This document shows positions 1 to 20,588 of a stretch of DNA of 64,000 nt, piece after piece. The DNA lies in NCBI RefSeq assembly GCF_000315625.1, contig NW_005434658.1:463139-527138 (forward strand), written 5' to 3'. The notes beneath the pieces were generated by a model. It saw only the letters and a list, made by a program, of their open reading frames with translations. It was not told the origin of the DNA and did not search any database. This DNA is from Guillardia theta CCMP2712 (Eukaryota; Protista; Cryptophyta). The position numbers and the translations under genes are program-made. Numbering within the stretch: the first letter of the stretch is position 1; the number at the start of each line of letters is the position of its first letter.

Positions 1-3000
1 AGATCGAAGTCAGCAGCGAGACATTGCGAAAGTCTCCCCCTTCACAAGTCCCGTTCAGCACAGCCCCAGCTAGGTCCTTGGAGCTGCAGGAGGCGGAAGA
101 GACGTTGTAGGAGGACGAGTACAGCGACAGGTTTCCTGTCACGTCGTTGACGAAGTGGTCGAGCTCGTGGCACTGGGGCTCAAGGGACCTCTCCTGGGAC
201 GAGATGTCGACGCAGAACATGAGCTGAAGGTGAGAGCTGCTGGAGTTGGAGCACAGGGAGTCCCAGTCGAGTGCGGAGAAGAGAGGATCGAGGGAGAAGG
301 AGGGTGCGTCGTTGACGCTGATGACGTGGAAGACGAACCGCGAGCTAGGAGAGCGGTTGCTCTCCCTCCCTCCCGACAACCCGCTGTCGAGCAAAGAGAT
401 GTCGTACACGAGCTTGCCGTGGTGCTGGGGGAGCAGGGAAGCTCGGAGCGTTCCGTTGGAGTCCACGTTGATAGCCTCGGACAGGAGCTGCCCCCATCCA
501 TCCGCGGCAGCTGGGGAAGAGGAGGCGTTGACCCAGTTCTGCCCCTGCTGGAAAGGCACCTGGTAAGACTGGAGGACGAGAAGGAAAGAGACGGTCTGTC
601 GCTGTTCGTTGGCCGGGCCCTGGGAAATGTTGACTGCAAAACCTTGCAGGGTGAACTGGAGCCCCTCGCAGTCCCCAGCTGAGATGGCGGACTGACAGCT
701 CTCGAGCATCGTTACCTCCGCCAAGGTCAGCTGGAAGGAGGGAGGCTGGTTGCTCCGGGTCACGTTGATGGTCAGGTTGAGCGAGATGGAGACGTTTGAC
801 TGGTTCACCCCAGTCGGGCCGGAGTCCAGCAGGTCAACCCGGTAGAGCACGAAGCCGATGGCGTCGGGGGCAAGTATGAAGGACAGGTTGCCGCTAACTG
901 CATCTAGCTCTGGCTCCTGCAGGATCAGCCAGGAGGGAGGCAGCTGAGCTGTAGCTGAGACGTTGGTGGGGCAGGGCCAGCAATCGCAGTCCATGAGCTG
1001 CCCGCCGTAGCAGAGAGGGCCGACGACGTCGAGGGGAGTCAAAACGAAGGTCAACTTCTGGTCCTGGTCTTCCTTTGGACCTGCGATGAGGTTGTGAGTG
1101 AAGAGATCGAGGAAGAGGATGGGGAAAGAGGATGGGCCATGGAAGGAAGAGGAGAGGAGAAAGGAAAGAGGCAAAGGTGGAGGTAGAGAGGTTGAGGCGA
1201 AGAGATGAAAGGAGGAGGAGGAAAGGAGGAGAGAGGAGAAAACGAGGAGGATGATAGAATTTACCTGCACTGATGTTCTTTGCCAAGCCCTCGATGACGA
1301 TGAGTTCGCCGGCAGGCTGGTGGGTCTCATAGACCGTGACGACGTCCTGCTGGAACTCAAAGGTAGGAGCGTCGTTGAGTGGGTCCACGACGACGGTGAC
1401 GTTGTGAGAGTACGAGCTGCCGACGAGCGAGACGAGCAGACGGCAGACGCAGTAGCTGTTGGCCGAGGGCCTGAAGGACAGGAAGGCGTCGCAAGTCTGG
1501 TTGAACGAGCAGGGCGGGACCTCCACGTGGGGCTCGACTTCGAAGCAATCTTGCAGGCAGCTCTCCGACGACTGGACGGTGTACTCGGCCGTTTGCAGGA
1601 GGCCGGGGATGAGCTTGCGGAGGTTGCCCCGCAACGTGATGTTGGTGAGGAGGTGAAAGGTCTGCAAGCTGGAGTCTTCCAGGGCTCCGACGGTGTCATG
1701 GAGGAGGACAGCGTGATAAAGCTCCTGCTCACTGTCAATCTGCTGCACCACGAGCTCACTGTAGAGGAGCTGGATCCCCGAGATGCTGATGGGAGAGCTT
1801 GTCAAGAACTCGAAGAACAGGTAGTCTGGCAGGTCCGATCGCAGCGTGACGGTCCCGCTGGCTAGGCCGCTCCCTGTCGTCAAGGAAAGCAGCCACGCGG
1901 GATAGTGAAGACTTTGAGAGATGGATTGAAGTAGCGAGGCCTCGTCGTAGGGCGCTGATGGGCTGCGCTGGAACTTGACCTTCCCTTCGCTCTGCACCAT
2001 CAGCAGGTTGAAACGAGCCGCTGCCGACGTGTTGCTCCCCATCCCACTGTCTACAGCCCGCAGGGAGAATGTCAGGCAGCCGCTGGCGTCCTTGCGCTGC
2101 TCTATCACGATGGTCCCGTTGCTCCACACGCGCAGAGGCTCTGCGAGCAGGTCGAGGTCGGAGGCCTCAGGCTCGAGGAAGAAGGAAAGAGTCTGATCAG
2201 CCTCGTGCCAGCCTCCCCTGCTGATGTTCTGTACGAAGCCCTCGAGAACGAGCGGGTGGGGCGAGACATAGGCATTCATGTCCATCACGATCGTTGGGAG
2301 GCCGCGGGTGCAGGAGGAGAAGTTGTAGTCGAGGACGTTCAGTGGGTAGAGGGAGAAGGTGGGAGGATCGTTCACTGGAAGGACCGTGATCGTGACAAGC
2401 CTTGGGAGTGACGTGTTTTGACCATTCCTTGCCGTCCCGCCATCATCGACGAGGACAAGCTCAATCATCGCTACCCCAAACATGTTGGCAGTTAGCAAGT
2501 AGTCCGCCCTTCCATCGCTCTCCACCGCCAGCCTCTCGAACAGCTCCGCTCCCTCCACGAACGAAATATGGAACGTGACATTCTGCCAGTCCTCGTCGCC
2601 GTAGGGCGAGCCTCTGCTAATGTTGAAGGCAAGGTAGTGGACCTCGGTGCTATCCTCATACCAGGACTCGTTGGCGACCTCGAAGTATGGCGCGTTGTTC
2701 ACAGGTTCTATCCGCACTCCCAACCTGTGCTCGACCGAGCGGTTGACCCCGCCGTTAGCCGTCCCGCCATCGTCAGAGAGCACAACGCTGAGCTGAACCT
2801 CTCCGTTGCGGTAGGGAGGGAGGCTGGAGGCGAGGGTCCCATTGGGGTGCAGGAGGAAGGCAGGCGGTAAATCAGGGAAAGACACGCTTTCGCTCCACAT
2901 CACCTCCACCTGGAAGGTGAGCAGCTGCTGGCCCTCGTCGGCTGCCCCAGCAGAGATGTTGCGGGCGACGTCGGCGATCATGCTGAATTCCGTTCCCTCC

Positions 3001-6000
3001 CACAGGGAGACGTTGACGAGCTCGAAGGTAGGCTGGCTGTTGACGGGCACGACCGTGATGTTCAGGTACATCAAGGTCGAAGTGTTGGACCCCCCGTTCG
3101 CCGTCCCCCCGTTGTCCTCCATGATCACCGACAGCGTCGCCAGCCCGTTGGCCCGGGGGTACTGGAGGAAGAGGAGGGTGCCGTTGGGGAGCATGGAAAC
3201 GTCAGAGATTAGCGGGTCCTGAGTCGAGGAGAGCAGATTGACTATGAAGGAAAACTTCTGGTCGACCTCGTCCGGCGAGATTCCTACCGAAATGTTGATA
3301 GCAACGTCCCGCCTGCTGACATGGACAAGCTCCTGCTGCTCGTAAACGTCAAAGTTCTCAACGGCAAAAGTTGGCTGGTCGTTGACTGGCAGGATTACAA
3401 GCTCGATCGTCTCGGGCGCTGACACGTTCTGCCCTCCTCGCTCTGTACCCCCGCTGTCCACCAGCTGCACCTCCACTGTGAAGTTTCCCACCTGGTGCTC
3501 CAGCACCTGGAACCTGGCAAGGCCAGTGGCGGGGTCGATGGAGAAGGGGGGGCAGGAGGAGCAGCTGCAAGGTTGATCGGCGAGGAAGCTCGGGGGGTCG
3601 ATGCTGATGACGGTGAAGGAGATCAGCTGATCGATCTCGTTCCCTGCTCCCGCTGAGATGTTGAACGCGACCTGAGTGAAGTTGCTGCAACCCGAGCCCT
3701 CCAGGACGGGAAGGGAGGGCAGGAGGGAGAACGACGGGCGATTATTGACGGGAAGCACGACCAGTTGCAGGAGTTTCACGTCTGAAACGTTTACCCCGCC
3801 CCTCTCTATCCCTCCGTCGTCCCGCAGGCTTACGGAGAAGTTTGCCGTCCCCCTCCTCGAGCTCTTGAGCTTCACTCTCAGAGTGCCGTTGGCGTCCAAG
3901 GAAACACTCTCGAAATCGTCACTCATCAGGGTACTTTCTCCCTCAAGGAGGCTGACGGTGAAGGAGACTCTCTGAACTCTGTCCTCATACACCGACCCTG
4001 CCGTGATGTTCACGGCGGCACCCTCCAGCTCCAGTTCACCACAAACAACGCACTCGTCGATGGTTTGATCTCGAACGTCGAAACCTGGTTTCTTGTTGAC
4101 CCAGCGTACGGTCACGTTGAAGACACTGGAGGTGTTGGTACAAGAGAAGCAAGTTCTTTCTACGTAGTTGACTTTCATCGCAGCCTCCCCGAAACAGACC
4201 GGAGACGCACTGAGCATCAGCGAGCCGTTTCCGTACACTTGCAAGTCCCTCAAACAGTCGCCAAGGGAGGACCGGGAAAGCAGCTCGTCGCCGTACATGG
4301 CCAGCGGCAGCTCTGGGTCAAACTCGAAGAGGAACGTCTGGTTTAGGCAGGGAGACGGGGCACCAAAGACGTCGTTAGAGATGTTGTAGAAGAAGTTGTC
4401 GAAGACCAAGACCGAGTCTTCAACCGGCTGATCGTACACCAACGAGTGAGAGACCATGAAGGTCGGCGGGTCGTGAACGGAAACAACTTGAATCTCGAAG
4501 CTTCTTCTGATGGAGGCATTGTTCCCTCCCATCCTGTCATCCACCAACATCACATAGAATTCTCCCCTCCCGAACCCAGACGTGGACAGGTTGAACGAAA
4601 GTACTCCACTCCCGTTCAAGCTCATTTCCGATATCAAGTTCCCCACCTCCTTCCCTGGGACCGGCCAGACGAGGAATGAGATCAGCTGCTCCAAGTCTTC
4701 GTAGGCACAAACGCCCTTGGAGATCGCATCGGCGAACCCCGGGAACTCGTGAGACCCGCTGCCCTCGCACACGCTGAGGCTCAAGGCAGGGAGCTGGAAG
4801 AAAGGAGGAGTGTTGATCGCCTCGACCACCACTTGAACAGTGAAGTTCACCGATGACATCCCGTTGAACTGACTCCCTCCGTTGTCCATCAGCGACACGT
4901 TGACATAGAATGATCCGTACACGCAAGGAGGGATGAAAAACTTGATCCGCGCTGTCTGGGGTTCATCGGGGGGAATGTACAGGGTGAAATTCTCAAGCGG
5001 AAACTCGTTTGACATGGGCCACCAGTCAAAGTTCAGGACCTGGGACTCTTCAAAGTACTTGTCAAAGCGAGAACCCTTGCTGATGTTGGAGAGAAACATC
5101 TGATCGAACGATGTGCCATTCACCAGAGTCTGCTGGAACACAAACACGTCGTTGACCAGGACAAACTCAGGGGCCTGATTCTTGGAAGATATCGCAATGG
5201 TGAAGTTTTTGGAATTCTCAGGCAACTGATCGATGACGACCGACAGGATGAAATCTCCGTTGGCATACGCAGCTGTCGTGAAGATCAAGCTTCCCCCTTC
5301 CAGCTTTGGGGAGACTCGAAACGCACGTTGAAAATCAGGTTCGGGTGAAATTAATTGAATCGACAAGTCAGGGTACGGTTGCAGGACGCCATAGAAGATA
5401 TCGGTGATGAAGCCGAAGTATGTGTACAACTCGTCTTGCTCAGACTCGACTAGGTCTATAGTCAACATGGTCTGATTGATTTCGAAGTTTTGAAGCATGG
5501 ATCTCTTTGGCAAGACGTAGACTTTGCATTCCTTCTCTGTCCAATTCATCCCACCATTCTGATTGCCACCGTCGTCTTGAATTCGAATCTTCAAATATAT
5601 CAACCCACCTTCGGGATCTACCGTGGTGAATGTAAGATTAGAGTCTTGGACACTGACACTTCCCAGCAAAAAGCCCGGGATATCGACTATATGAAACGAT
5701 AACAATTGATTCTGCTCATTGGGTGCGTAAGAGCTGTTTGGGCTGATGCCGTAGAGGAAAGGATAAGAGTGCGGGAGAGAGGAATAAGAGATCACAAGGG
5801 TTTGACAAGAGAATGTCGGGGCGCTGTTGATATCAGAGGCCTGGAAGTGCAACTCATTGACTGATTGAACAGAGGTCCCTCGACTGACAAGCTCAAAGGA
5901 AAGCGCCACGTCTTTGACGGCTGGATCAGCAAATTCGTTCGTGGGCGAGCAATCGATTTCAGTCGAAGAAACAAAGATAGAAGTAAGGTTTTGGATTACT

Positions 6001-7223
6001 GCCTGTCCTGAATCCCTGAATACGCAAAAGCTCTCGACATTCTCGAAACCATTCCCCAGTATCGTGATCGAGGTCCTGCCGAAAGCATTACCAATAGTCG
6101 GCTCGATCCTCCTGATTTGAGGTAGGAACTCAATCGACAGTGACAAGTTGGAGTGTAGGAGATCCTTTTCGAAGTTGTACTCGATGGGGGTGTTCCAGGA
6201 CGAGTCGCACCAATATTTGGTCACACGGAAACTGACCAGCTGCGCTTCAAATTTCCAGGACATGATTGTGCAGTTCATCAAGCTCGAGTTGTACACTAGA
6301 CAGCTCCATGAAGAGAAACCGGGAGCGTCAAGTCTGTACCGCACGTTCTTTCGCACGCTCAGATAGTTAGTGTCCGAAGTCTGCTTGTAGAATGGAGGCA
6401 GGACCTGCTGTGAAATGAAATCCAGTCCTGCACCCTGCAGCATGACAGATGCTCCTTCTTCTGAGTAGACGATAGAAGGCTGATACGCTACAATCTCCTC
6501 TTCGATTTCGAAAATCCCTTTCCTTGTGTCGTGTGATTTGATATCGAAAGGGGTGCCTGTTGAATCTATCATCGTCAGCTGGATAAGAACCACTCGTGCG
6601 GGATAGTTCCATACTGGAGTGACTACCTCCAGCAAGGATTCTGAAATGGTCTGCACCTCAGCCACTTCGCTGTGAATTAAATTTATATCTTCGCTGTACA
6701 CGAAGGAGCAAGAATAGTTGTATTTCGAGGAAAAGCCCAACCCCTTGATGTCCAATACCATGCCACCGACCGCTGATCCCTTGGTGATCTTCAGCGTCGA
6801 TGGCAGCCAGATGGCATAAACAAATATTTTGAGACTTGATAAACAAGTGTTCCACATGGAATTGTTCTGATAGGAAAACTTCACGTCAAATGCTCCCCCT
6901 TCACACGCTCCTGATTGCATACAGAAGTCTTTGACATAGAAGATGTGCGTATCATTGTGAGATGCGGACGGTGCTAATGCTTGATTGCTGAAATTCATTA
7001 AGATGGGAGAGACTGAAAACTGACCAAAGACTGTTATCTGCGTCCAACCGAGGATAGACATGGACGATGGTTCAATTCTATTTACAATGACCAGGTCGCT
7101 GCAGTGATCCTCTGATTGACATGCAACCAGGGAAAGGAAGCTGAGAAGGAAGAAGTGCTGCAGAAAGCGACGAGTAGAAGAGCCGGTGCGATGATGGGAG
7201 GAGCGACTGCTGTCAGCCATCAT
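1..7223 (-). CDS. Giant secreted/surface protein: signal peptide, IPT/TIG-like domains, then many cadherin-like/Ig-like repeats; 3' end runs off the window
   Basis: 2109-aa ORF with hydrophobic leader (FLQHFFLLSFLSLVAC) and IPT-like 'IEPTIGNAFGRTSITILGNGF'. Repeated motifs 'PVNDxPxF', 'NISxG..E..Q.L.F' and 'DDGG...GG.N.S'. An intron at 1081-1264 (GTAA...GCAG) restores the repeat frame (GPKEDQDQKLTF...), which continues towards the window edge. Confidence 0.85.
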
Positions 7224-7524
7224 CGCGGCAGCTCGAGAAAGAATACAGTGAGAGAGGATGAGAATCGAAGGCTACTTGGATCAGCAGCTGAGGGGAGGAG
7301 ACGGCAGCGGGCGGCGGCCAGCTCGGGGCGTGTCCAGGACTGCCATGTCCCTGTGGCGCCTCTGGCGAACGAGAGGTCAAATTGATGGCCGTTACATTAC
7401 TAGTCATAATCCGTAACCGCCAAACACAGCCTTTCGTCCAATCGGGCCCGCTCCGGAGCTAGACCCAGCACCACTTGACCTCATCCCCGCTCAATACCCG
7501 AGCGCTTTGCACGTGCGAAGGAAT

Positions 7525-10967: not shown

Positions 10968-11369
10968 GCGGTGATGGTGAAATCGGACGACCTGACAAGA
11001 GTTAGTCAGGCAGGTTTGAACGAGTTTTTCCCCCACCAACTATCCCACAGGTCATCCATTAATACTAGCTAGCCAACACTGAAAGTGATAGCCAGTGTGA
11101 TAACTACTGTCACCAACATATCACTGACGTCGCATGCCCTTTCCCCCAAAAAGGTTAAACTTCAACACTCTGCTCGCTGCCGCCCTCTTGGTACACTCTT
11201 GATACAAGGAGGATGTTACCATCTAGCGATCTTCCCCACACCATCCTTGCCATCTCCCCCTGCTCTGCTCTCCTTGTCTCTCCTCTCTCCTTCACCACAT
11301 CATCACGCTTTCGAGGCGCATTACACAGCAAGCGCCCCATCCTTGTGTCACCTTCTCACCCTCATCCCG

Positions 11370-11695
11370 GGTCACTGTGACCGTCGCCCCGGCGCCCCGG
11401 CGCCCCGGCGCGGGCGGCCCCGGCGGGCCCGGGCCGGCCCCCGGGGGTCCGGCCGGGCCGGGCCCTCCCGTGGCCGGCGTGACCGTCTCGCGGACTCGGG
11501 AGGCTGGGCCCGATGGGCCATGATGATCGGCTCAGCTATCATAGTATCATTGATCTGACGGTGACTCGGTCGGAGGCCGCCCTGATCATGCTGCCGAGCC
11601 CGACAGTCGGCGGCCCGGCTTCAAGTCCCGAGTTAAGCAGGCCTCGCCGCGGCGGCGAAGTCGCAGTGAGGCTGTACCGTCAGTGTGTTAACCAG
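11370..11695. other. GC-rich intergenic island
   Basis: Dense CCGG/GGCC/GCCC words plus TGACTC, TTCAAGT and ATCATG; no credible ORF. Confidence 0.6.
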
Positions 11696-11798
11696 TAATT
11701 GCATGATCACTTAGATAAAAGTTTACAAGTCCATAAAAGTTTACAACTTAGTCCCGAGTCCATCAGGTCTCTACGCCCAGGCTTCCAAGCCTGTCTGC

Positions 11799-12845
11799 TC
11801 ACACGCCGAGTAGTGCGATCGACTCCAAAACAGTCTCGGCCGGGCTCGCGCTCGTGTCCCTCGACGCTCCAAGCTTGTCCAGGAGCCACATGCTCTGTGG
11901 GCTGCTGTCTTGTAGGCCCAGCACCAGCGGGTGGTCAAGCATCTGCTCCAGGATCTCGAAGAGGAGACGCTGGGCCTCCGGGCGCTGGCTGCTGCTGACG
12001 TCTGCTTGCGGCAAGATGTCGAGCGCGAGGTGCATGACCTTGCGGAAGTCGTCAAAGGCGAGGGCCTCGCACGCGATATCAAGCAGGCCCGGGTGGCGCT
12101 CTAGGCAGTAGCCGCCCACGCGCATGACCGGAGCCGCGAACAGGAGGTACCGCTGGTCCACGTACGCCTTGAGGAGCAGGAGGAGGAGGCTGAGAGACGT
12201 CAGGTAGCGCCGGTCCTCGATGCGGACCAGGGCGATGGACATGACGGCATCGCTGACCTCGCGCAGCATCAAGGAGCAGTCGTCCTCTGCCACCTGAGTG
12301 AAGCAGACCGACAGACTCACGGAGGCGTCCCACGACCGGGGGGAGAAGCAGCTCACGTCCCGAGCAACGCACTCGGCATAGAGGGAGCTGCGCGCGGTGT
12401 AGCGGGGAGAGGGGCAGTCCTGCTCGACATCAAAGCAGAGCCGGAAGCACTTCTCGAGGGCAAGCCTCAGCTCGAGGCCGTCATCGGAGGACCGGGACAG
12501 GTAGGCCTGGTAGACCTGGGGGACGAGCAGCTGATAGCTCCCGGAGGGAGAGCAGAACTGGCATGCGCGGAGGGCGATAGACATGCGGACGATGAGTGGG
12601 CTGTAGGACGAGGAGAGGTTGAGGAGACACTCCTTGGGTACTGCAGGATCTTGGTCGTCAATGTCGAGGAGCTGTATGACGAATCCAAGGCGGAAGGCCT
12701 CGGACACCAGCCTGGCATAGAAGACGACCTCGGATCCGATGGGGACGAAGGCCAGCTGATGGAAGCCACTGGGGACGGAGTAGAGTCTGAGGGTGTCGAA
12801 GACGGAGGATACGAGCTCCTGGACGGAGGAGCCAGACGCGGGCAT
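11799..12845 (-). CDS. Hypothetical 348-aa protein, copy A1 (apparently intronless)
   Basis: ATG-to-stop ORF with strong C/G-ending codon bias; duplicated TGTAA-containing element downstream; no family recognised. Confidence 0.7.
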   Translation of the reverse strand: MPASGSSVQELVSSVFDTLRLYSVPSGFHQLAFVPIGSEVVFYARLVSEAFRLGFVIQLLDIDDQDPAVPKECLLNLSSSYSPLIVRMSIALRACQFCSPSGSYQLLVPQVYQAYLSRSSDDGLELRLALEKCFRLCFDVEQDCPSPRYTARSSLYAECVARDVSCFSPRSWDASVSLSVCFTQVAEDDCSLMLREVSDAVMSIALVRIEDRRYLTSLSLLLLLLKAYVDQRYLLFAAPVMRVGGYCLERHPGLLDIACEALAFDDFRKVMHLALDILPQADVSSSQRPEAQRLLFEILEQMLDHPLVLGLQDSSPQSMWLLDKLGASRDTSASPAETVLESIALLGV

Positions 12846-13218
12846 GGGCAGGAGGTTGCGTCAGACAGGCGTTTGCTTCAAGGGAGAAGAGGGAGGGTTC
12901 GGAGCTGTCAGAGCACGCGGAGGTGTGGTTCTAGGACTGAAGGTAGGTAAGGGGGAGGCTGATGAATGCTGTTGAGGTCAGAGAGAGTAGTTCTTTCCTT
13001 ATCATGCTCGTGCTGCCTTCCCCTGCATGCACCCACAAACCAGCGAGAAAATGAAAATGCTACCCCTACCCCGTTTCTCAGGACAAGTACATGAGGGTGG
13101 TGGTACCACCATCAAACTCCCGCTCCAAACAGGGGGTACTTGCACCTTTTTCCGCTGGTTTGTGGGTGCCAATCCCTTCCATAAGGGAAAACAAGGATGA
13201 ACAGATCAACACCTGCCC

Positions 13219-14265
13219 ATGTCCGCGTCTGGCTCCTCCGTCCAGGAGCTCGTATCCTCCGTCTTCGACACCCTCAGACTCTACTCCGTCCCCAGTGGCT
13301 TCCATCAGCTGGCCTTCGTCCCCATCGGATCCGAGGTCGTCTTCTATGCCAGGCTGGTGTCCGAGGCCTTCCGCCTTGGATTCGTCATACAGCTCCTCGA
13401 CATTGACGACCAAGATCCTGCAGTACCCAAGGAGTGTCTCCTCAACCTCTCCTCGTCCTACAGCCCACTCATCGTCCGCATGTCTATCGCCCTCCGCGCA
13501 TGCCAGTTCTGCTCTCCCTCCGGGAGCTATCAGCTGCTCGTCCCCCAGGTCTACCAGGCCTACCTGTCCCGGTCCTCCGATGACGGCCTCGAGCTGAGGC
13601 TTGCCCTCGAGAAGTGCTTCCGGCTCTGCTTTGATGTCGAGCAGGACTGCCCCTCTCCCCGCTACACCGCGCGCAGCTCCCTCTATGCCGAGTGCGTTGC
13701 TCGGGACGTGAGCTGCTTCTCCCCCCAGTCGTGGGACGCCTCCGTGAGTCTGTCGGTCTGCTTCACTCAGGTGGCAGAGGACGACTGCTCCTTGATGCTG
13801 CGCGAGGTCAGCGATGCCGTCATGTCCATCGCCCTGGTCCGCATCGAGGACCGGCGCTACCTGACGTCTCTCAGCCTCCTCCTCCTGCTCCTCAAGGCGT
13901 ACGTGGACCAGCGGCACCTCCTGGACGCGGCTCCGGTCATGCGCGTGGGCGGCTACTGCCTAGAGCACCACCCGGGCCTGCTTGATATCGCGTGCGAGGC
14001 CCTCGCCTTTGACGACTTCCGCAAGGTCATGCACCTCGCGCTCGACATCTTGCCGCAAGCAGACGTCAGCAGCAGCCAGCGCCCGGAGGCCCAGCGTCTC
14101 CTCTTCGAGATCCTGGAGCAGATGCTTGACCACCCGCTGGTGCTGGGCCTACAAGACAGCAGCCCACAGAGCATGTGGCTCCTGGACAAGCTTGGAGCGT
14201 CGAGGGACACGAGCGCGAGCCCGGCCGAGACTGTGTTGGAGTCGATCGCACTACTCGGCGTGTGA
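13219..14265 (+). CDS. Hypothetical 348-aa protein, copy A2 (apparently intronless)
   Basis: Differs from A1 at 5 residues (P/S, R/Q, Y/H, F/D, R/H). A possible GTGAGC donor overlaps the stop, so a short extra exon cannot be excluded. Confidence 0.7.
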   Translation: MSASGSSVQELVSSVFDTLRLYSVPSGFHQLAFVPIGSEVVFYARLVSEAFRLGFVIQLLDIDDQDPAVPKECLLNLSSSYSPLIVRMSIALRACQFCSPSGSYQLLVPQVYQAYLSRSSDDGLELRLALEKCFRLCFDVEQDCPSPRYTARSSLYAECVARDVSCFSPQSWDASVSLSVCFTQVAEDDCSLMLREVSDAVMSIALVRIEDRRYLTSLSLLLLLLKAYVDQRHLLDAAPVMRVGGYCLEHHPGLLDIACEALAFDDFRKVMHLALDILPQADVSSSQRPEAQRLLFEILEQMLDHPLVLGLQDSSPQSMWLLDKLGASRDTSASPAETVLESIALLGV

Positions 14266-14692
14266 GCAGACTTCGGAAGGCAAGATCAGGCGGGGCTAAA
14301 GAGAGATCAGGGTTTGCAAAGATTGTGAGATGCGGGGTGTAACCCCGCCGTTTCTGTGAAGTACTTGATCAGCAAACCGACAATCACAATTCTCGCTCAA
14401 AAGACAGCCGGACAGGGGACACGAGACAGCAAGGTGATGCTTGAAGTGAAACACAACATGTCCGAGCCCTGAATACAACATACACGTTTTGAATCTCAAA
14501 AATTCTTTGCGACATCTTCCCGCCTACACGTGCTTTGAGGACAGAGTGATGGCAACGACGGTATATCAACATGAGTGTTCTGTAGCATCAATCAGCATCG
14601 TCTCGTGTTTATATCATATCTATCTGTTATCTAAGATGTTAAAATTCCCTCTAACAAGGCCTCCCTTTCCTGCTCTTCCCCTCTTCCCTCCT

Positions 14693-15712
14693 CTAGTAGA
14701 AACCCTCGATCCACCATCCCCCCATCCCCTCCTCCGTCTGCTCTAGTAGCACCGATACGAAGCCCTCCTCCTCTCCCGGCGAGCTCCCGCTGCTCATCTC
14801 TGTGCCGTCGCTGCCGCTCTCCCTTTCGCTGGCCTCCAGTAGCTCCTCCAGCACCCTCGGCTCTTGCGACGGCCAGCCCCCGGCCCCCTTGCACGACTCG
14901 TTCTCACCTCCGACTCCCGTGCCTGCCCCCGCTGTCGTCCAGAGCTCGTCGCCCTCGGTCAGGCACGCGCTCAGCATCGCCTTCCATCCCTCAGCCTCTG
15001 ACGACGCGGCTACAGCGGCTTGCTCCCACGCCGCCTCGTCGTCCTTCTTCGCGTCCTTGCGATCGTAGCACGACAGCCCGGCCTTGAGGCATCGGGCGCA
15101 TGGCCGAGCCTCGTCGCAGCCGATCTTGGACCGCCGGCAGTAGGCGCATGCTTTGTCGACGTGCTTGCGCTTGTGCGGTCGCAGCATCCTGTAGATGTCC
15201 GACCGACGCGCGTACCCAAGGTCCTGTCCCCACGGAGCAGCCGCTGCCGCGAAGTGCTCGAGGCACTCCGTGCACGCCATCACGACGTTGGAGCTGCACC
15301 TCGAGCAGGGCTTGTCCATGCTGCACTTGACCTTCTTCTGTCTGCATCCCTCGCACGACTTGCGCTTCGGGGGCAGCGACAGATGCTGCGTCTTGGGGGC
15401 GACGACGGGGAGGTAGCCCAGGGGGCTGCGGCTGGCGAGGGCGAAGGCTTCCGACTGTCCGCTGAAAGCCACGCAGCTCTGGTCCCATCCCCGGCGCTGG
15501 CACCGCGAGCAAGGACGAGCATCGTCGCACTTGACCTTGTTTGTCTTGCAGTGGATGCAGGCAGCGGAGGTCCTACGAGCACGGCGAGGCTTGTTTGCGG
15601 GGAGAGGAGAGGAGGGGGTAGAGGGAGAGGAGAGAGGGAGAGGGGAGAGGTCAAAGCTCGAGACGGGGAGGAGAGAGCTTGAGACGGGGAGGAGTGCATC
15701 AGGGCAGAGCAT
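14693..15712 (-). CDS. Zn(II)2Cys6 transcription factor with three clusters, copy B1
   Basis: Three CxxCx6Cx5CxxCx6-8C motifs (CIHCKTNKVKC, CEGCRQKKVKC, CAYCRRSKIGC) and an acidic/aromatic C-terminus. Confidence 0.9.
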   Translation of the reverse strand: MLCPDALLPVSSSLLPVSSFDLSPLPLSSPSTPSSPLPANKPRRARRTSAACIHCKTNKVKCDDARPCSRCQRRGWDQSCVAFSGQSEAFALASRSPLGYLPVVAPKTQHLSLPPKRKSCEGCRQKKVKCSMDKPCSRCSSNVVMACTECLEHFAAAAAPWGQDLGYARRSDIYRMLRPHKRKHVDKACAYCRRSKIGCDEARPCARCLKAGLSCYDRKDAKKDDEAAWEQAAVAASSEAEGWKAMLSACLTEGDELWTTAGAGTGVGGENESCKGAGGWPSQEPRVLEELLEASERESGSDGTEMSSGSSPGEEEGFVSVLLEQTEEGMGGWWIEGFY

Positions 15713-16121
15713 GATGTCGTTCTGTCCGGGAAGCTGAGCGCGCTATGTGCTGTTAGGTTGTAGAGGATTTGTCACCTGAGCAGGTCGCAACGACGGACTT
15801 GTTGTAGCGGAGGAGCCCAGTTTACTACACGCTTGTTTTCGGCATCCTCCGTGCATGACACCGTAAAATGATTTTTAGCTAAAAGTAAAGAGAAAGAAAA
15901 CCGTTGTAAAAACTGCACCTTAGTACCTCCCCTCGTGCTATAACGTTTTTAAGCAGCCGCTGCCTAACTGGTTGGAGATTTTACAGTAAAAATACCTCGT
16001 GATCACATCGGAATCCTCCGAAGACATGAGGACATCTTCCGGCTGACCGGAAAAGATTCTCGTACCCGGCAGAAGATATTGAGAAAATAGACCTGGTCCC
16101 TCCTGGTCAGTCCTCGCCGTC

Positions 16122-17123
16122 ATGCTTTACCCTGATGCTCTCCTTCCCGTCTCGAGCTTTGACCTCTCCCCTCTCCCTCTCTCCTCTCCCTCTACCCCCT
16201 CCTCTCCTCTCCCCGCAAATAAGCCTCGCCGTGCTCGTAGGACCTCCGCTGCCTGCATCCACTGCAAGACAAACAAGGTCAAGTGCGACGATGCTCGTCC
16301 TTGCTCGCGGTGCCAGCGCCGGGGATGGGACCAGAGCTGCGTGGCTTTCAGCGGACAGTCGGAAGCCTTCGCCCTCGCCAGCCGCAGCCCCCTGGGCTAC
16401 CTCCCCGTCGTCGCCCCCAAGACGCAGCATCTGTCGCTGCCCCCGAAGCGCAAGTCGTGCGAGGGATGCAGACAGAAGAAGGTCAAGTGCAGCATGGACA
16501 AGCCCTGCTCGAGGTGCAGCTCCAACGTCGTGATGGCGTGCACGGAGTGCCTCGAGCACTTCGCGGCAGCGGCTGCTCCGTGGGGACAGGACCTTGGGTA
16601 CGCGCGTCGGTCGGACATCTACAGGATGCTGCGACCGCACAAGCGCAAGCACGTCGACAAAGCATGCGCCTACTGCCGGCGGTCCAAGATCGGCTGCGAC
16701 GAGGCTCGGCCATGCGCCCGATGTCTCAAGGCCGGGCTGTCGTGCTACGATCGCAAGGACGCGAAGAAGGACGACGAGGCGGCGTGGGAGCAAGCCGCTG
16801 TAGCCGCGTCGTCAGAGGCTGAGGGATGGAAGGCGATGCTGAGCGCGTGCCTGACCGAGGGCGACGAGCTCTGGACGACAGCGGGGGCAGGCACGGGAGT
16901 CGGAGGTGAGAACGAGTCGTGCAAGGGGGCCGGGGGCTGGCCGTCGCAAGAGCCGAGGGTGCTGGAGGAGCTACTGGAGGCCAGCGAAAGCGAGAGCGGC
17001 AGCGACGGCGCAGAGATGAGCAGCGGGAGCTTGGGAGAGGAGGAGGGCTTTATATCGGTGCTACTAGAGCAGACGGAGGAGGGGATGGGGGGATGGTCAC
17101 AGTGGATCGAGGGGTTTAGTTAG
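16122..17123 (+). CDS. Zn(II)2Cys6 transcription factor with three clusters, copy B2
   Basis: Same as B1 apart from a 7-aa N-terminal indel and C-terminal differences. Confidence 0.9.
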   Translation: MLYPDALLPVSSFDLSPLPLSSPSTPSSPLPANKPRRARRTSAACIHCKTNKVKCDDARPCSRCQRRGWDQSCVAFSGQSEAFALASRSPLGYLPVVAPKTQHLSLPPKRKSCEGCRQKKVKCSMDKPCSRCSSNVVMACTECLEHFAAAAAPWGQDLGYARRSDIYRMLRPHKRKHVDKACAYCRRSKIGCDEARPCARCLKAGLSCYDRKDAKKDDEAAWEQAAVAASSEAEGWKAMLSACLTEGDELWTTAGAGTGVGGENESCKGAGGWPSQEPRVLEELLEASESESGSDGAEMSSGSLGEEEGFISVLLEQTEEGMGGWSQWIEGFS

Positions 17124-17124
17124 A

Positions 17125-18000
17125 GGCGGCAGCGGCGCACTGCCGCCGGCCTGGAGCCTCGGAGAGGTTCCATCAGGGTGCCGTACCGAGTCGTACGCTG
17201 GGTACGGCGGTATCAGCCCCCGCACAGTATATGCCGCATCATAGTTCGGTACCGGGGTGACCGCCGGTACCATAATCTGATCAGATCATTTTAACAGACC
17301 CTATCAGTCTGAATAAACTACTTTAAGTCTCATTCCTTCGGCGGCTGCCACAGCCGCTGAGCGACTCATCGCTGGCATGGCCGGGGCGCGGGGCCGCATG
17401 ATGGTCCTGCGCGCAGTTACTATCAAGTGAAGGCCCGCGGTACGCCCTGACGAGTCAGTTGAGCCTGGGGGACCGTCAGCAGCCAGTGGCAGGATTGGGT
17501 TTGGTTCTCGCTGTCTTTTCTCTTCTCGCCATTTGGCCTTTGCGACAGCCTGTGTCAGGATCAAGCCTCCTCGACTCTCAGCGAGACTGATTGTCCTCGT
17601 ACCGGAGTCCGGCGGGCGAGTCATAGTGCCACGGTGCGACCGCCCGGCCGCCGTCAGCCGTTTCAATGATGCAGTTTTTGACTCTCTGAGTCAGTAATTC
17701 CCCTTACTCAAACGGTTAAGTTAAAAATCAGTACGAGGACAATCAGGAGAGTCGAGGAGGCTACTGAGTCCGATCAGTAATATTCTGGCGTGACTTTTAC
17801 CGTACTTTGCCCGGCCCACTCAGGGCCCGGACTTGAACTGCCGCCAGTCTGAGCCCCCCCGCCAGGCCCTCCGAGTCACGCTGCTCAGTGCGGCCGCGGC
17901 CGGCTCCGAGGCTCCGGGCCGGGGGCCAGGCTCCCGGAGCCGGGCTCCGAGCTCCCTGGAGTCCGAGCTCAGCGGCCCGGCCGGGCGCCCCCCTGGGGAT
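17125..18000. other. GC-rich intergenic island
   Basis: Many short palindromes and hairpins, with GAGTCA/TGACTC, GTACCG and CCGG words. Confidence 0.55.
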
Positions 18001-18031
18001 TGACGGTTACGTCTTAGAGCTCACTGAAAAT

Positions 18032-20588
18032 ATGGAAGGAGGAAAGACGCGGATCCGATCAGGGCCGTGAGGGATGTTGACAGTGGTAAGTGAAGGCTCA
18101 AAGCACAGGACTCGCTGATAAGGACCTCTACAACCTCACATGCACGAGTTCACCGCAGCCTCGGTCAGAAAGAGGCTCGAGGACGGAGCACAGCGAGCGA
18201 GGTCCAGGTCAGCTCTAGCATCAGATCGTCATATGGAGGACATGCTTGCGATCGTGCTGAGTGTTTGTCCTGCAGAGAGAGGGAGTCAAAGCCGATCGGG
18301 ATGCGGGGATCTCCTGCAGCAGCGCCCAAGGCATCACCAGCAGCGAAAGCTGCTTCTTCCGCGACCAAGGATAGAAGCAGAAGGGCGTCAAAGTCACCCG
18401 GTCGCGCAAGGAAACTTGCCGTGAGTCGGCGCTAGACGAATAAGCTTCAATCAAACTTGTTGCGCAGGAGCTGATCGAGGAGAACAAGAGACTGTCGGGG
18501 TTGGTACAGGCTGATGAGACGCGCTCCCACGAGTATAAGACCTTATTTGAATCCTACCTGGAGAAAGAGCAGGATATTTTGAGCCGGTAAGTTGGAATCC
18601 TTTGCCGTGATCACGCGTGAAACATGGTTGGACTCAGTTTCCTCGAAGAATCTGTGAGAATGAAACGAGACGAGAATGCGAATGAAGAGGAGCAATCTTT
18701 GATCAAGATAGCATTTGAGCATAGGATTGCACAACTCCTCACGCAAATTACCGAGAAAGACACATCTATTCGACAATCAAAACTTGAGCTAGCGCAATTC
18801 AAAGAAATGACTCTGAACTGCATGGACGAACAGCATCAGGAGTGGACCGCTTTGCTCGAGCAGAATCATTCTAGACAGGAGAGTCTGAGCAAGCAATGCA
18901 GGTCCTTACCTTGCATGATGATAAACAGTTGTAGTGATCGTACAACAGGATGTTGGAAGAGCAGCTCAGAACTTTTCATCGCGAAAGGGAAGAATTAATT
19001 GCAGCAAATCAGAAACGTGTCCAGAAGCTCGAGGTTGATCGTGCTCTTGCCTGTAGATTTACATTTTGAAATCCTTATACCATGTAGGAAGAGAAAGCTG
19101 TATTAGAAGACAAGGTGCTACCAGTCTCTGATTCAGTTTGAAATTGAATCTTCTCCAGGTCAGAACATTGACAGCGAAGGTAAATGTAAAGGAGGGCAAC
19201 GTGGTCCGGCAGCAAGACACACGAGAGCTCTCATTGAGCCTAGACAATGAGCTTGAGCTTGCTACAGAGGCTCTTCGGATCGCTCAGGTGGTACTTGGCC
19301 GTGCATTGCTGATGCGTAACTGGACTTCGTTGAAAGGAGATCAACAATGATGCGCGTCATCCTGATTCGGACGATCGCGTTCGGGCTAGTCGAGGGAGGG
19401 AGAATGGCTATCCGATTCATCATCAGACAAACTATGGTGAATGCAAGAACTGTAAGGTCCTCCAGACCTTGCTGGAAGATGCCAGGGCTCAGTGTGAGGT
19501 CGTTGGCAAGCCAGTGACTCCCTTCTATCTCAATCAAGTTTCAGTTGTTGGGAGCTCAGAACAAACGGACGGGTGACAAGCTTGCAGACTGCGAAACAAG
19601 GTGAAGGCAAATCTGTCGTCCTTCGACGTCCTTGATGTTTCTGGTTAGGTGTGAAGAGCTCAAATCGCTTCATGACGATTCTTGTTGGGAGGTAAAATAG
19701 TGAATTTTGATTTGGACTGATCTGTCATATTTTCTTGGAGGATGACCTTATTTTCCTATACCACTTTATTCACTGTTCTGATCAGGCTACAAGGCTGCAA
19801 AAAGCGTATCAAGAGCTTGAGGAGAGAAAGTACTGGGAGCAATACGTGTTTATTCTCGTGATGTTGTTACAGCGAAGAACTGATCAGGGAGAACGAGATG
19901 AACAAGATGGAATTGAAGGCGGCTCGCAGATCCGTTAAGAACCTAGTTCAGAGTGGTAAGGTTTGCCCTTCTGTCTCACGTGTCTGATTTGTTTTCTGGC
20001 ATTTCATAACTACAGAGGCAGAGGAGGTCAGTCTTGTTCGCACTTGGGGGATTCGCATTTACGATGTTGCTCTCACCAGGTGTGCAGAAGAAGATTGGAA
20101 CTAGAGAGCTTGGAGAAACATTTGAAGACAGGCGAATTATGTCAAATGTGCCCTCAGACGGGTTCTTACTGGGCTGTTCAGATGCCGAAGCCACAGTCGC
20201 CCTGCTGGAAGAATCTTTGAAGCACTCACACATAGAGCTTGAAAGTCTCCGGAAACAGCTCAACGAAGCTTCAGAGCAGATCACAAAGCTTGAGGCAGAG
20301 GTGAGTGCACCATGTGTGGTGATGATGACAGCAGCTCAGACAATGACAGCTCGAGCGCCAGAGAAATGTAAAGGACGACTCCGAAGATTGGAAGGTCAGG
20401 GCAGAGAGAGCTTCCAGGATCAACCAGCTTCTACTCCCTAAACTTGCAACCCTCCTCTCTGGTAGGACCATGCTTCCCTCCCCCATACTTTGTTCTCCAC
20501 TGAACTACCTATAGACCGTGTTGACACCAAGGAAACCTCCTCTGAGGGTGGTTCGGCCTTCGACCTCCTCCTTGAGCTTCAGGGTTGA
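18032..20588 (+). CDS. Hypothetical coiled-coil protein (multi-exon)
   Basis: E/K/L/Q-rich heptad exons (e.g. 'HRIAQLLTQITEKDTSIRQSKLELAQFKE', 'IELESLRKQLNEASEQITKLEAE') separated by about 50-nt GT-AG introns. Confidence 0.65.

Follow-up and report, generated by a model that had tools for sequence, protein, structure and literature searches.

How do two gene palindromes come to lie side by side in the Guillardia theta CCMP2712 nuclear genome, and what keeps their arms nearly identical? The window, meaning the whole stretch of 64,000 nt that was analyzed, contains two adjoining head-to-head inverted gene duplicates, A1/A2 and B1/B2, at 11793-17129 (Table 1). The original prediction proposed that they form a regulatory module of a transcription factor and its partner, kept alike by gene conversion between the arms, or else a recombinational switch, possibly at a mating-type or life-cycle locus.

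Table 1. Features of the two gene palindromes, in window positions.
Feature	Position	Strand	Description
Palindrome A left arm	11793-12852	-	Gene A1, CDS 11799-12845, 348 aa, orphan, predicted all-alpha
Palindrome A spacer	12853-13211	.	359 nt, unique, asymmetric; holds both 5' regions; without CGG-N6-CCG
Palindrome A right arm	13212-14271	+	Gene A2, CDS 13219-14265, 348 aa; 7 nt and 5 aa changed relative to A1
Inter-palindrome unique region	14272-14686	.	A2 and B1 point toward each other, 3' end to 3' end; ~90% identity to the relative
Palindrome B left arm	14687-15675	-	Most of B1 (CDS 14693-15712, 339 aa); the CDS begins 37 nt outside the arm
Palindrome B spacer	15676-16137	.	462 nt arm to arm, 409 nt ATG to ATG; presumed shared bidirectional promoter
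Palindrome B right arm	16138-17129	+	Gene B2, CDS 16122-17123, 333 aa

The arms of palindrome A are 1060 nt each with 99% identity. In palindrome B, ungapped alignment delimited arms of 909 nt each (14767-15675 and 16138-17046) with 99% identity, and allowing gaps lengthened them to the limits given in Table 1, at 97.7% identity. Besides these 2 palindromes, no repeat of at least 100 nt was found in the 64-kb window. All 4 ORFs (A1, A2, B1, and B2) are intact single frames. Homology of the A arms starts 7 nt upstream of the ATG and ends 6 nt past the stop codon. Homology of the B arms starts 16-37 nt within the CDS and ends 6 nt past the stop, so the B N-termini differ by a 7-aa indel, B2 being without the insertion of B1 and having a slightly different C-terminal tail. 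The repeat coordinates, ORFs, DNA depth, and metagenome contigs thus bear out the predicted layout of 2 adjacent gene palindromes with ~1-kb arms and 4 intact ORFs. Of the spacer lengths first given, 359 nt was correct for A, but 409 nt measures from start codon to start codon in B, and the predicted confinement of homology to the CDS held for A (-7 to +6 nt), while in B the homology stops short of the 5' end of the CDS. The GC-rich islands said to flank the block (~11370-11480 and ~17850-18000) are present, but they are just CCGG-rich low-complexity DNA, resemble each other only at that level, and are poorly kept in the close relative described below. We also looked on both sides of the A-B block for terminal inverted repeats and for the frame of a mobile element and rejected both, the candidate matches being GC-rich low-complexity similarity.

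The presence of both copies is genuine and was not created by the assembly. Run X1, an independent set of DNA data, gave the unitig of the A arm a depth of 141.7, about twice that of the spacer (76.4) and the flank (70.6), and this unitig stopped exactly at the repeat ends. Raw reads of run X14 (ChIP-input-type DNA) covered arms and spacers evenly, A1 and A2 differ at 7 fixed positions, and a single metagenome contig spans arm, spacer, and arm. An X1 joint between 14803 and 16940 was dismissed as a graph artefact, having 30 letters on one side, of GGAGG-type low complexity.

We searched for domains and relatives of the 2 encoded proteins. The A protein gave 0 Pfam matches, no PDB match below E = 0.4, and no Atlas match at 0.9 or above; its AF2 model is all-helical and of low confidence (pLDDT 49.5). 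The sole paralogue of A, on C79, is single-copy and a single open frame. The B protein carries 3 Zn2Cys6 clusters (Zn_clus, PF00172) in 3 stretches, scoring 74.5 bits against a Pfam cut-off of 21, with an acidic tail in B1, and the close relative retains all 18 cysteines. The G. theta genome holds ~118 Zn2Cys6 matches. The paralogues of B, like that of A, are single open frames, by which intronlessness is evidently a family trait. As in fungal Gal4-type Zn2Cys6 transcription factors (PF00172), the clusters of B are complete (CX2CX6CX6CX2CX6-8C) and the C-terminal tail is acidic. B differs in having 3 clusters in one 333-aa protein where the fungal proteins have 1, in being without the Fungal_trans middle-homology domain and a recognizable coiled-coil, and in belonging to an expanded, cryptophyte-specific family.

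A further likeness to the fungal factors lies in the promoter of B itself. The B spacer contains 2 CGG-N6-CCG sites, with the triplet spacing used by fungal Ppr1, one at 15840-15851 and one at 16009-16020, and CATGA comes after both. The expected number was 0.086, none of 500 dinucleotide shuffles had 2 or more sites, and 1% of control 400-nt windows did. Such a site lies upstream in 11 of 15 B-family genes, representing 5 of ~6 independent loci, compared with 7.5% of control windows. These putative sites suggest autoregulation of the B family. The C16 and C35 B spacers have nothing that aligns between them beyond this motif class.

The age of the palindromes was read from metagenome contigs of a close relative (L027, L028, and L034, from ENA assemblies; dS ~0.06). 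These contigs are colinear with window positions 11321-19895 and together contain the junction from the A1 start through the spacer to A2, B1 with the beginning of the B spacer, and the B spacer with B2 and the right flank. Because of this colinearity, both palindromes and the adjacency of A and B are older than the split from the relative. The A spacer of the relative keeps conserved blocks, with indels of 60, 43, 20, and 9 nt, and the arm-specific 7-aa N-terminal indel of B1/B2 is common to both species. The region between the palindromes, at the identity given in Table 1, was used as a yardstick of roughly neutral divergence.

Despite this age, the copies group by species and not by arm. 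In A, 30 informative sites and a 12-codon indel present in both copies of the relative group by species, compared with 1 site by arm (a CpG transition) and 0 cross sites, and in B the counts are 12, 1, and 1, the species-grouping sites being unpolarized as the comparison has no outgroup. Between A1 and A2 there are 7 differing sites in G. theta and 12 in the relative, compared with 34-45 between species; the A1/A2 and B1/B2 comparisons in the relative draw on contigs of 2 samples, and some of the arm differences may be strain differences. Parts of the two A arms do stand together on one contig, L028, where 6 of 214 nt differ. The B1 of the relative has 25 private sites, clustered outside the central region, a pattern that points to mosaic tracts. 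Since the palindromes predate the split, yet the arms are closer within than between species, the arms have evolved in concert in A and in B alike, which we infer to be the work of arm-to-arm gene conversion, and this part of the original prediction is supported.

We analyzed base composition in the arms and in their paralogues. GC3 is 0.85 in the A arms compared with 0.52 in the single-copy C79 paralogue, and 0.79-0.82 in palindromic B pairs compared with 0.64-0.77 in other B paralogues; other long frames in the window range from 0.41 to 0.75. Arm-private mutations run the other way, with 32 from G/C to A/T and 17 opposite, so some force must restore GC. The GC3 excess of the arms fits GC-biased conversion, as far as composition can tell. 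Selection on codon usage is another possible route to raised GC3.

Taken together, we consider it probable that the locus consists of 2 old neighboring inverted gene duplicates, each held near-identical by repeated intrachromosomal conversion between its arms, and that it is neither a module nor a switch. Conversion tracts would begin and finish within the CDS. The unselected flanks and spacers would diverge by substitutions and indels until they stopped pairing, wearing the homology back to the CDS edges, and repeated GC-biased conversion would have pushed the GC3 of the arms to ~0.8-0.85. Each spacer would act as an asymmetric bidirectional promoter, and Zn2Cys6 family proteins may control their own genes through the 2 CGG-N6-CCG sites of the B spacer. 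That A and B are neighbors would be chance, a local duplication that was passed on, in a genome that may often give rise to inverted copies of intronless genes. Conversion mediated by cDNA was rejected as the reason for CDS-only homology, the presumed transcript contigs of run X2 reaching ~60 nt (5') and ~450 nt (3') into sequence that the arms do not share.

Rozen et al. reportedly described, in 2003, sex-chromosome palindromes with arm-to-arm gene conversion, including P1-P8 of the human and ape Y and palindromes of the X. The G. theta palindromes resemble these in their inverted arms, unique spacers, and intact arm genes, in an age greater than a species split, in arm-to-arm identity above between-species identity, and in signs of GC bias. 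They differ in scale, with arms of ~1 kb instead of 9 kb to 1.45 Mb, and each arm is one intronless CDS with homology ending within 10 nt of coding sequence. Further, they belong to a unicellular alga and not to a non-recombining sex chromosome, and 2 different genes adjoin. Concerted evolution with CDS-confined homology is known from yeast TEF1/TEF2, ribosomal-protein pairs, and globin duplicates. With such pairs the G. theta copies share CDS-limited homology, diverged flanks, and clustering of paralogues by species, whereas they sit next to each other in inverted orientation, with a spacer of 0.36-0.46 kb between them, and the layout recurs in several transcription factor families of a single genome.

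Among the alternatives, the most durable is a functional twin module in which B is the transcription factor and A its partner or target, both kept palindromic and adjacent, for example as a stage-specific cassette. The close relative retains the adjacency and both palindromes, so the missing A-B linkage in relatives that would have counted against the original prediction was not seen in this one, but at dS ~0.06 it is too near for synteny to count. A and B are alike in being intronless, in their very high GC3, and in weak, variable representation in presumed RNA runs. In X2 (2011), a run presumed to be RNA, its type being a guess, one contig covers 13159-14716 (A2) and another runs from 15986 to past 17400 (B2); these contigs carry the flanks of A2 and B2 and none specific to A1 or B1, and the 2 right-hand copies may therefore be co-expressed. 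Against a module, no Zn2Cys6 gene lies within the 20 kb examined around the A paralogue on C79 or on the match list of that contig, and none of the ~118 Zn2Cys6 matches has an A-like gene beside it. The A spacer has no CGG-N6-CCG, though most B-family promoters carry one, and A has no recognizable domain. With A and B unlinked at their paralogous loci and the motif missing from the A spacer, we regard such a module as unlikely, contrary to the original prediction.

A recombinational flip-flop, in which a crossover of one arm with the other turns the spacer around and exchanges 2 unequal promoters as a heritable switch, is in our judgment very improbable. Inverted repeats that convert can also cross over, both spacers are asymmetric, and the flank-specific X2 contigs derive from right-hand copies only. 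The spacer, however, has one orientation relative to the outer flanks in 3 assemblies, the G. theta reference and both metagenome samples (for the A spacer, contigs L027 and L028), the read data consisting of 38-nt reads and unitigs against arms of 1 kb, and an inversion would swap almost nothing. The arms are themselves genes and 99% identical, so an inversion would re-link a promoter (in B, together with the first 5-12 codons) to a near-identical coding body; besides the promoters and the N-terminal codons of B, only arm differences lying between the crossover and the spacer would move, and both spacers (359 and 462 nt) are devoid of genes. Comparable palindromes are also present elsewhere in the genome, including in a second gene family. 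In the methylotrophic yeasts Ogataea polymorpha and Komagataella phaffii, repeats flank a segment with MAT genes, and inversion moves these genes into or out of a silenced region. The likeness to G. theta ends with recombination-capable inverted repeats, as here the repeats are the genes, the invertible segment is a 0.4-kb promoter region, and a second orientation is unseen. The suggestion of a mating-type or life-cycle locus likewise gained no support, the orphan and Zn2Cys6 genes both being outside known mating-type classes and A and B being nearly silent in one raw RNA run. Recent independent inverted duplication in each lineage without conversion, or an assembly artefact, would account for the very high arm identity in a genome where inverted duplication is seemingly frequent, but is extremely improbable given spacers homologous between species, the same arm boundaries and a common B N-terminal indel in both, two-fold arm depth in independent DNA, and one contig across arm, spacer, and arm.

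Similar gene palindromes elsewhere in the genome had been named in advance as counting against an organized cassette, and we identified them in 2 gene families, Zn2Cys6 (C35 and C103) and RWP-RK (C147 and C50), the families from which this estimate of recurrence is drawn. The Zn2Cys6 palindrome on C35 has arms of 1013 nt with 98.6% identity and a spacer of ~530 nt and is nested within a second inverted pair; C103 holds inverted Zn2Cys6 copies as well. The C16 and C35 B paralogues form sister clades, both palindromic. Among adjacent RWP-RK pairs, counted by hand from the match table, ~23 were inverted and ~39 direct, and ~12 of the inverted pairs had equal domain scores. Three RWP-RK inverted repeats were confirmed in the DNA itself. 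In the C147 pair, identity is 99.8-100% across comparable blocks of 444 and 182 nt, with homology from ~20 nt upstream of the ATG; an intron was rejected as the cause of the 2 blocks, an N gap of the assembly interrupting one arm. The C50 pair has 98% identity, and L048 carries a 217-nt inverted repeat with 100% identity, as a DNA-level match only. A full-text literature search, with the genome paper of Curtis et al. 2012 outside its scope, yielded no account of inverted duplicates in the nuclear DNA of Guillardia.

It is possible, though we hold it tentatively, that G. theta has a genome-wide class of CDS-delimited mini-palindromes made up of intronless transcription factor genes (Zn2Cys6 and RWP-RK) with some orphans. 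Each mirror pair would flank a common bidirectional promoter (self-binding in the case of Zn2Cys6) and would be proof-read by long-term GC-biased conversion, which may go back to before the C16 and C35 paralogues separated. Such a class would amount to a Y-chromosome-like strategy of self-repair across the autosomal genome of a protist. The present pairs are a clean and datable example of concerted evolution in tiny cryptophyte gene palindromes, with one-gene arms, homology limits at coding edges, and GC3 far above that of a single-copy paralogue. If they prove frequent, they would partly explain why this genome has so many near-identical paralogues and provide a tractable system for biased gene conversion in a lineage other than animals, fungi, and plants. 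They would also be relevant to assembly and annotation, because palindrome arms collapse in short-read graphs. That 2 palindromes of equal size stand side by side, the only ones in 64 kb, is still a mild coincidence.

The window lies in the G. theta reference genome (87.1 Mb, 669 contigs), and a repeat search of its 64 kb identified two neighboring inverted repeats, palindrome A with an orphan gene pair (A1 and A2) and palindrome B with a triple Zn2Cys6 pair (B1 and B2), and no further repeat of at least 100 nt. Each arm carried a single open frame (348 aa in A1 and A2, 339 aa in B1, and 333 aa in B2); B1 and B2 had three Zn_clus domains each (Pfam, 74 bits), and no Pfam family was matched by A1 or A2. 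Homology tightly tracked the coding sequence in both pairs, with alignment limits from 7 nt 5' of the ATG to 6 nt past the stop codon in A and from 16-37 nt within the coding sequence to 6 nt past the stop codon in B. The layout first proposed was correct, except that its B spacer of 409 nt is the distance from ATG to ATG; the arms themselves lie 462 nt apart. CCGG-rich low-complexity tracts border the palindrome block (window 11370-11480 and 17850-18000). Elsewhere in the window, the minus strand holds one open frame of 2125 codons (897-7271, GC3 0.68); the genome has been described as rich in introns.

Inverted gene pairs in the window and the outer inverted pair of contig C35 (L018 and L019, pieces of C35 sequence used for comparison)
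Feature	Position	Orientation	Description
Palindrome A arms	11793-12852 and 13212-14271	inverted	1060 nt, 99% identical, spacer 359 nt
Palindrome B arms	14767-15675 and 16138-17046	inverted	909 nt, 99% identical (repeat search)
Palindrome B arms, gapped	14687-15675 and 16138-17129	inverted	97.7% identical (BLAST with gaps)
C35 outer pair	G000:C35:638187-639089 (L018:5188-6090) and 647893-648797 (L019:4894-5798)	inverted	905 nt, 97% identical

Both palindromes are real DNA. In an independent DNA run from 2021 (X1), the A arm formed a 1049-nt unitig ending exactly at the repeat ends, and its depth of 141.7 was about twice that of the spacer unitig (76.4) and of the downstream unique unitig (70.6), so two A copies are present. 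B-arm pieces in the same run had depths of 77-98, against 45-71 for their unique neighbors. This two-fold A-arm depth, the even cover of the whole 5.9 kb by raw 38-nt DNA reads (X14), and positions with fixed differences between the arms of both pairs confirm the twin inverted gene pairs of the original prediction. At window 15005 and its mirror 16808, where the reference has an identical base in both arms, a C>T / G>A variant was seen in about one-third of X14 reads and also in a contig of a 2011 run (X2); either the cultures now in use differ between arms at this site or the consensus of the reference is collapsed there.

Among 1.8 billion cluster representatives, only three kinds of A homologue were identified: an orthologue about 90% identical (range 89-92%), a paralogue 30-33% identical that is a singleton on contig C79, and an orthologue of this paralogue. 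ENA metagenome assemblies of two samples, which belong to a single project, supplied the contigs that carry these orthologues. One contig (L027) spans the A2 start, the spacer, A1, and the left flank; a second (L028) runs from the A1 start through the spacer, A2, the inter-palindrome region, and B1 into 80 nt of the B spacer; and a third (L034) contains B2 between 280 nt of B spacer and 2.7 kb of right flank, so the layout A1-spacer-A2 followed by B1-spacer-B2 is present in this close relative. Between the two species, dS was about 0.06 in A, and the A spacer aligned as homologous blocks interrupted by several indels. The unique A2-B1 intergenic region was about 90% identical, whereas the outer flanks beside the A1 and B2 stop codons were poorly kept.

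In a four-sequence codon alignment of A (two copies from each species), 30 sites and a 12-codon indel united the G. theta copies against those of the relative, with 1 site grouping by arm (a CpG transition) and none crosswise. The difference between A1 and A2 amounted to 7 sites in G. theta and 12 in the relative, whose two arms derive from two samples, compared with 34-45 between species; L028 alone, with 214 nt of one A arm and all of the other, showed 6 differences. In B, 12 sites grouped by species, 1 by arm, and 1 crosswise. A 7-aa N-terminal indel outside the arm separates B1 from B2 in both species and therefore fixes arm orthology. In the relative's B1, private sites (25) were concentrated in the two outer thirds, N- and C-terminal, and the center was homogenized, indicating mosaic conversion tracts. 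Duplication before the species split, with arms yet closer to each other than to their orthologues, is what arm-to-arm gene conversion characteristically leaves behind, and these alignments support the original prediction that such conversion may maintain both palindromes.

GC3 was 0.85 in the A arms and 0.52 in the C79 singleton, 0.79-0.82 in the palindromic B pairs of this contig (C16) and C35, 0.64-0.77 in tandem or more diverged B paralogues, and 0.41-0.75 in other long frames in the window. Arm-private mutations were mostly G/C to A/T (9 vs 2 in A, 23 vs 15 in B), and some force must therefore hold GC high; we infer GC-biased gene conversion as the economical cause.

It was also proposed that crossover between arms inverts the spacer, working as a flip-flop switch, perhaps at a mating-type locus. 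We consider such a switch very improbable. Since the same coding body lies on both sides of the spacer, inversion would do no more than reconnect half of the promoter region (for B, together with a few initial codons) to a gene that is nearly the same. In all three assemblies the A spacer pointed the same way with respect to the outer flanks; minor orientations are beyond the reach of 38-nt reads and unitigs. No known mating-type gene class was identified among the palindrome genes, and the mating-type reading is likewise not supported.

Gene conversion between inverted copies is set here in a genome where such pairs recur, and the evidence says that the locus is not very special. The B family has about 118 genome matches, in tandem arrays and inverted pairs. 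Contig C35 harbors a second head-to-head Zn2Cys6 pair (1013-nt arms, 98.6% identical, spacer about 530 nt), enclosed by an outer inverted pair with copies about 9 kb apart. The two are roughly concentric, and the nest looks like a palindrome of several genes whose similarity survives only in gene-sized blocks. In a tree of sampled family members, the C16 and C35 pairs were sister clades (support 98/97), and the palindromic habit may therefore predate their split. Contig C103, with the paralogue GUITHDRAFT_116986, has inverted B-family copies 88-95% identical. Tandem Zn2Cys6 arrays were also observed, with direct units of about 2.85 kb, 99-100% identical, at C189:2594-14465 (L025, L026), and another array of eight copies on C73 in the B-family match table.

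In the unrelated RWP-RK family, a hand count from the match table gave about 23 inverted and about 39 direct adjacent pairs, with equal domain scores in about 12 of the inverted ones. Three inverted repeats were checked at the DNA level: a tail-to-tail pair on C147 (99.8-100% identical over comparable 444-nt and 182-nt blocks, homology beginning about 20 nt 5' of the ATG), a head-to-head pair on C50 (98%), and a 217-nt repeat in L048 (100%). One arm of the C147 palindrome is interrupted in the reference by an N run (L036/L035, G000:C147:142338-147564), which limits the comparison to those two blocks and hints that palindromes of this kind gave rise to gaps in the assembly locally. The RWP-RK expansion, with at least 150 domain matches, many in local arrays and equal-score inverted pairs, is unusually large for a unicellular alga. 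Intronlessness is a trait of the A and B families, not of palindromes as such. The locus belongs among palindromic gene pairs under concerted evolution, already known as a kind, and is a well-documented new example of a layout that recurs in G. theta.

Fungal Zn2Cys6 proteins bind CGG triplets. Two CGG-N6-CCG sites lie in the B spacer (15840-15851 and 16009-16020), each followed by CATGA, against 0.086 expected, and none of 500 dinucleotide shuffles reached two; the C35 spacer likewise has two. Across upstream regions drawn from the window and L018-L026, 11 of 15 B-family genes, at 5 of about 6 independent loci, had at least 1 site, compared with 7.5% of control 400-nt windows. By analogy, this enrichment fits auto- or cross-regulation of the B family through CGG-triplet binding, making these candidate self-binding sites. 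The A spacer has no CGG-N6-CCG site, and the enrichment does not make A a target. No A-like neighbor was found beside any B paralogue among the genome B-family matches, no repeat in the 20 kb surrounding the C79 A paralogue, and no Zn2Cys6 match on the whole C79 contig; A and B are thus unlinked at every other locus, and a module of transcription factor plus partner or target is not supported.

A raw RNA run contained 2 reads from the palindrome region among 19.8 million records, and presumed RNA runs held 0 to 0.5 of A2 words. Contigs of X2, guessed to be RNA from its patchy cover, extended from A2 and B2 into the flanking sequence specific to each, and none carried A1- or B1-specific flanks. 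Expression of the A and B genes is therefore low and variable, and possibly only the right-hand copies, A2 and B2, are expressed.
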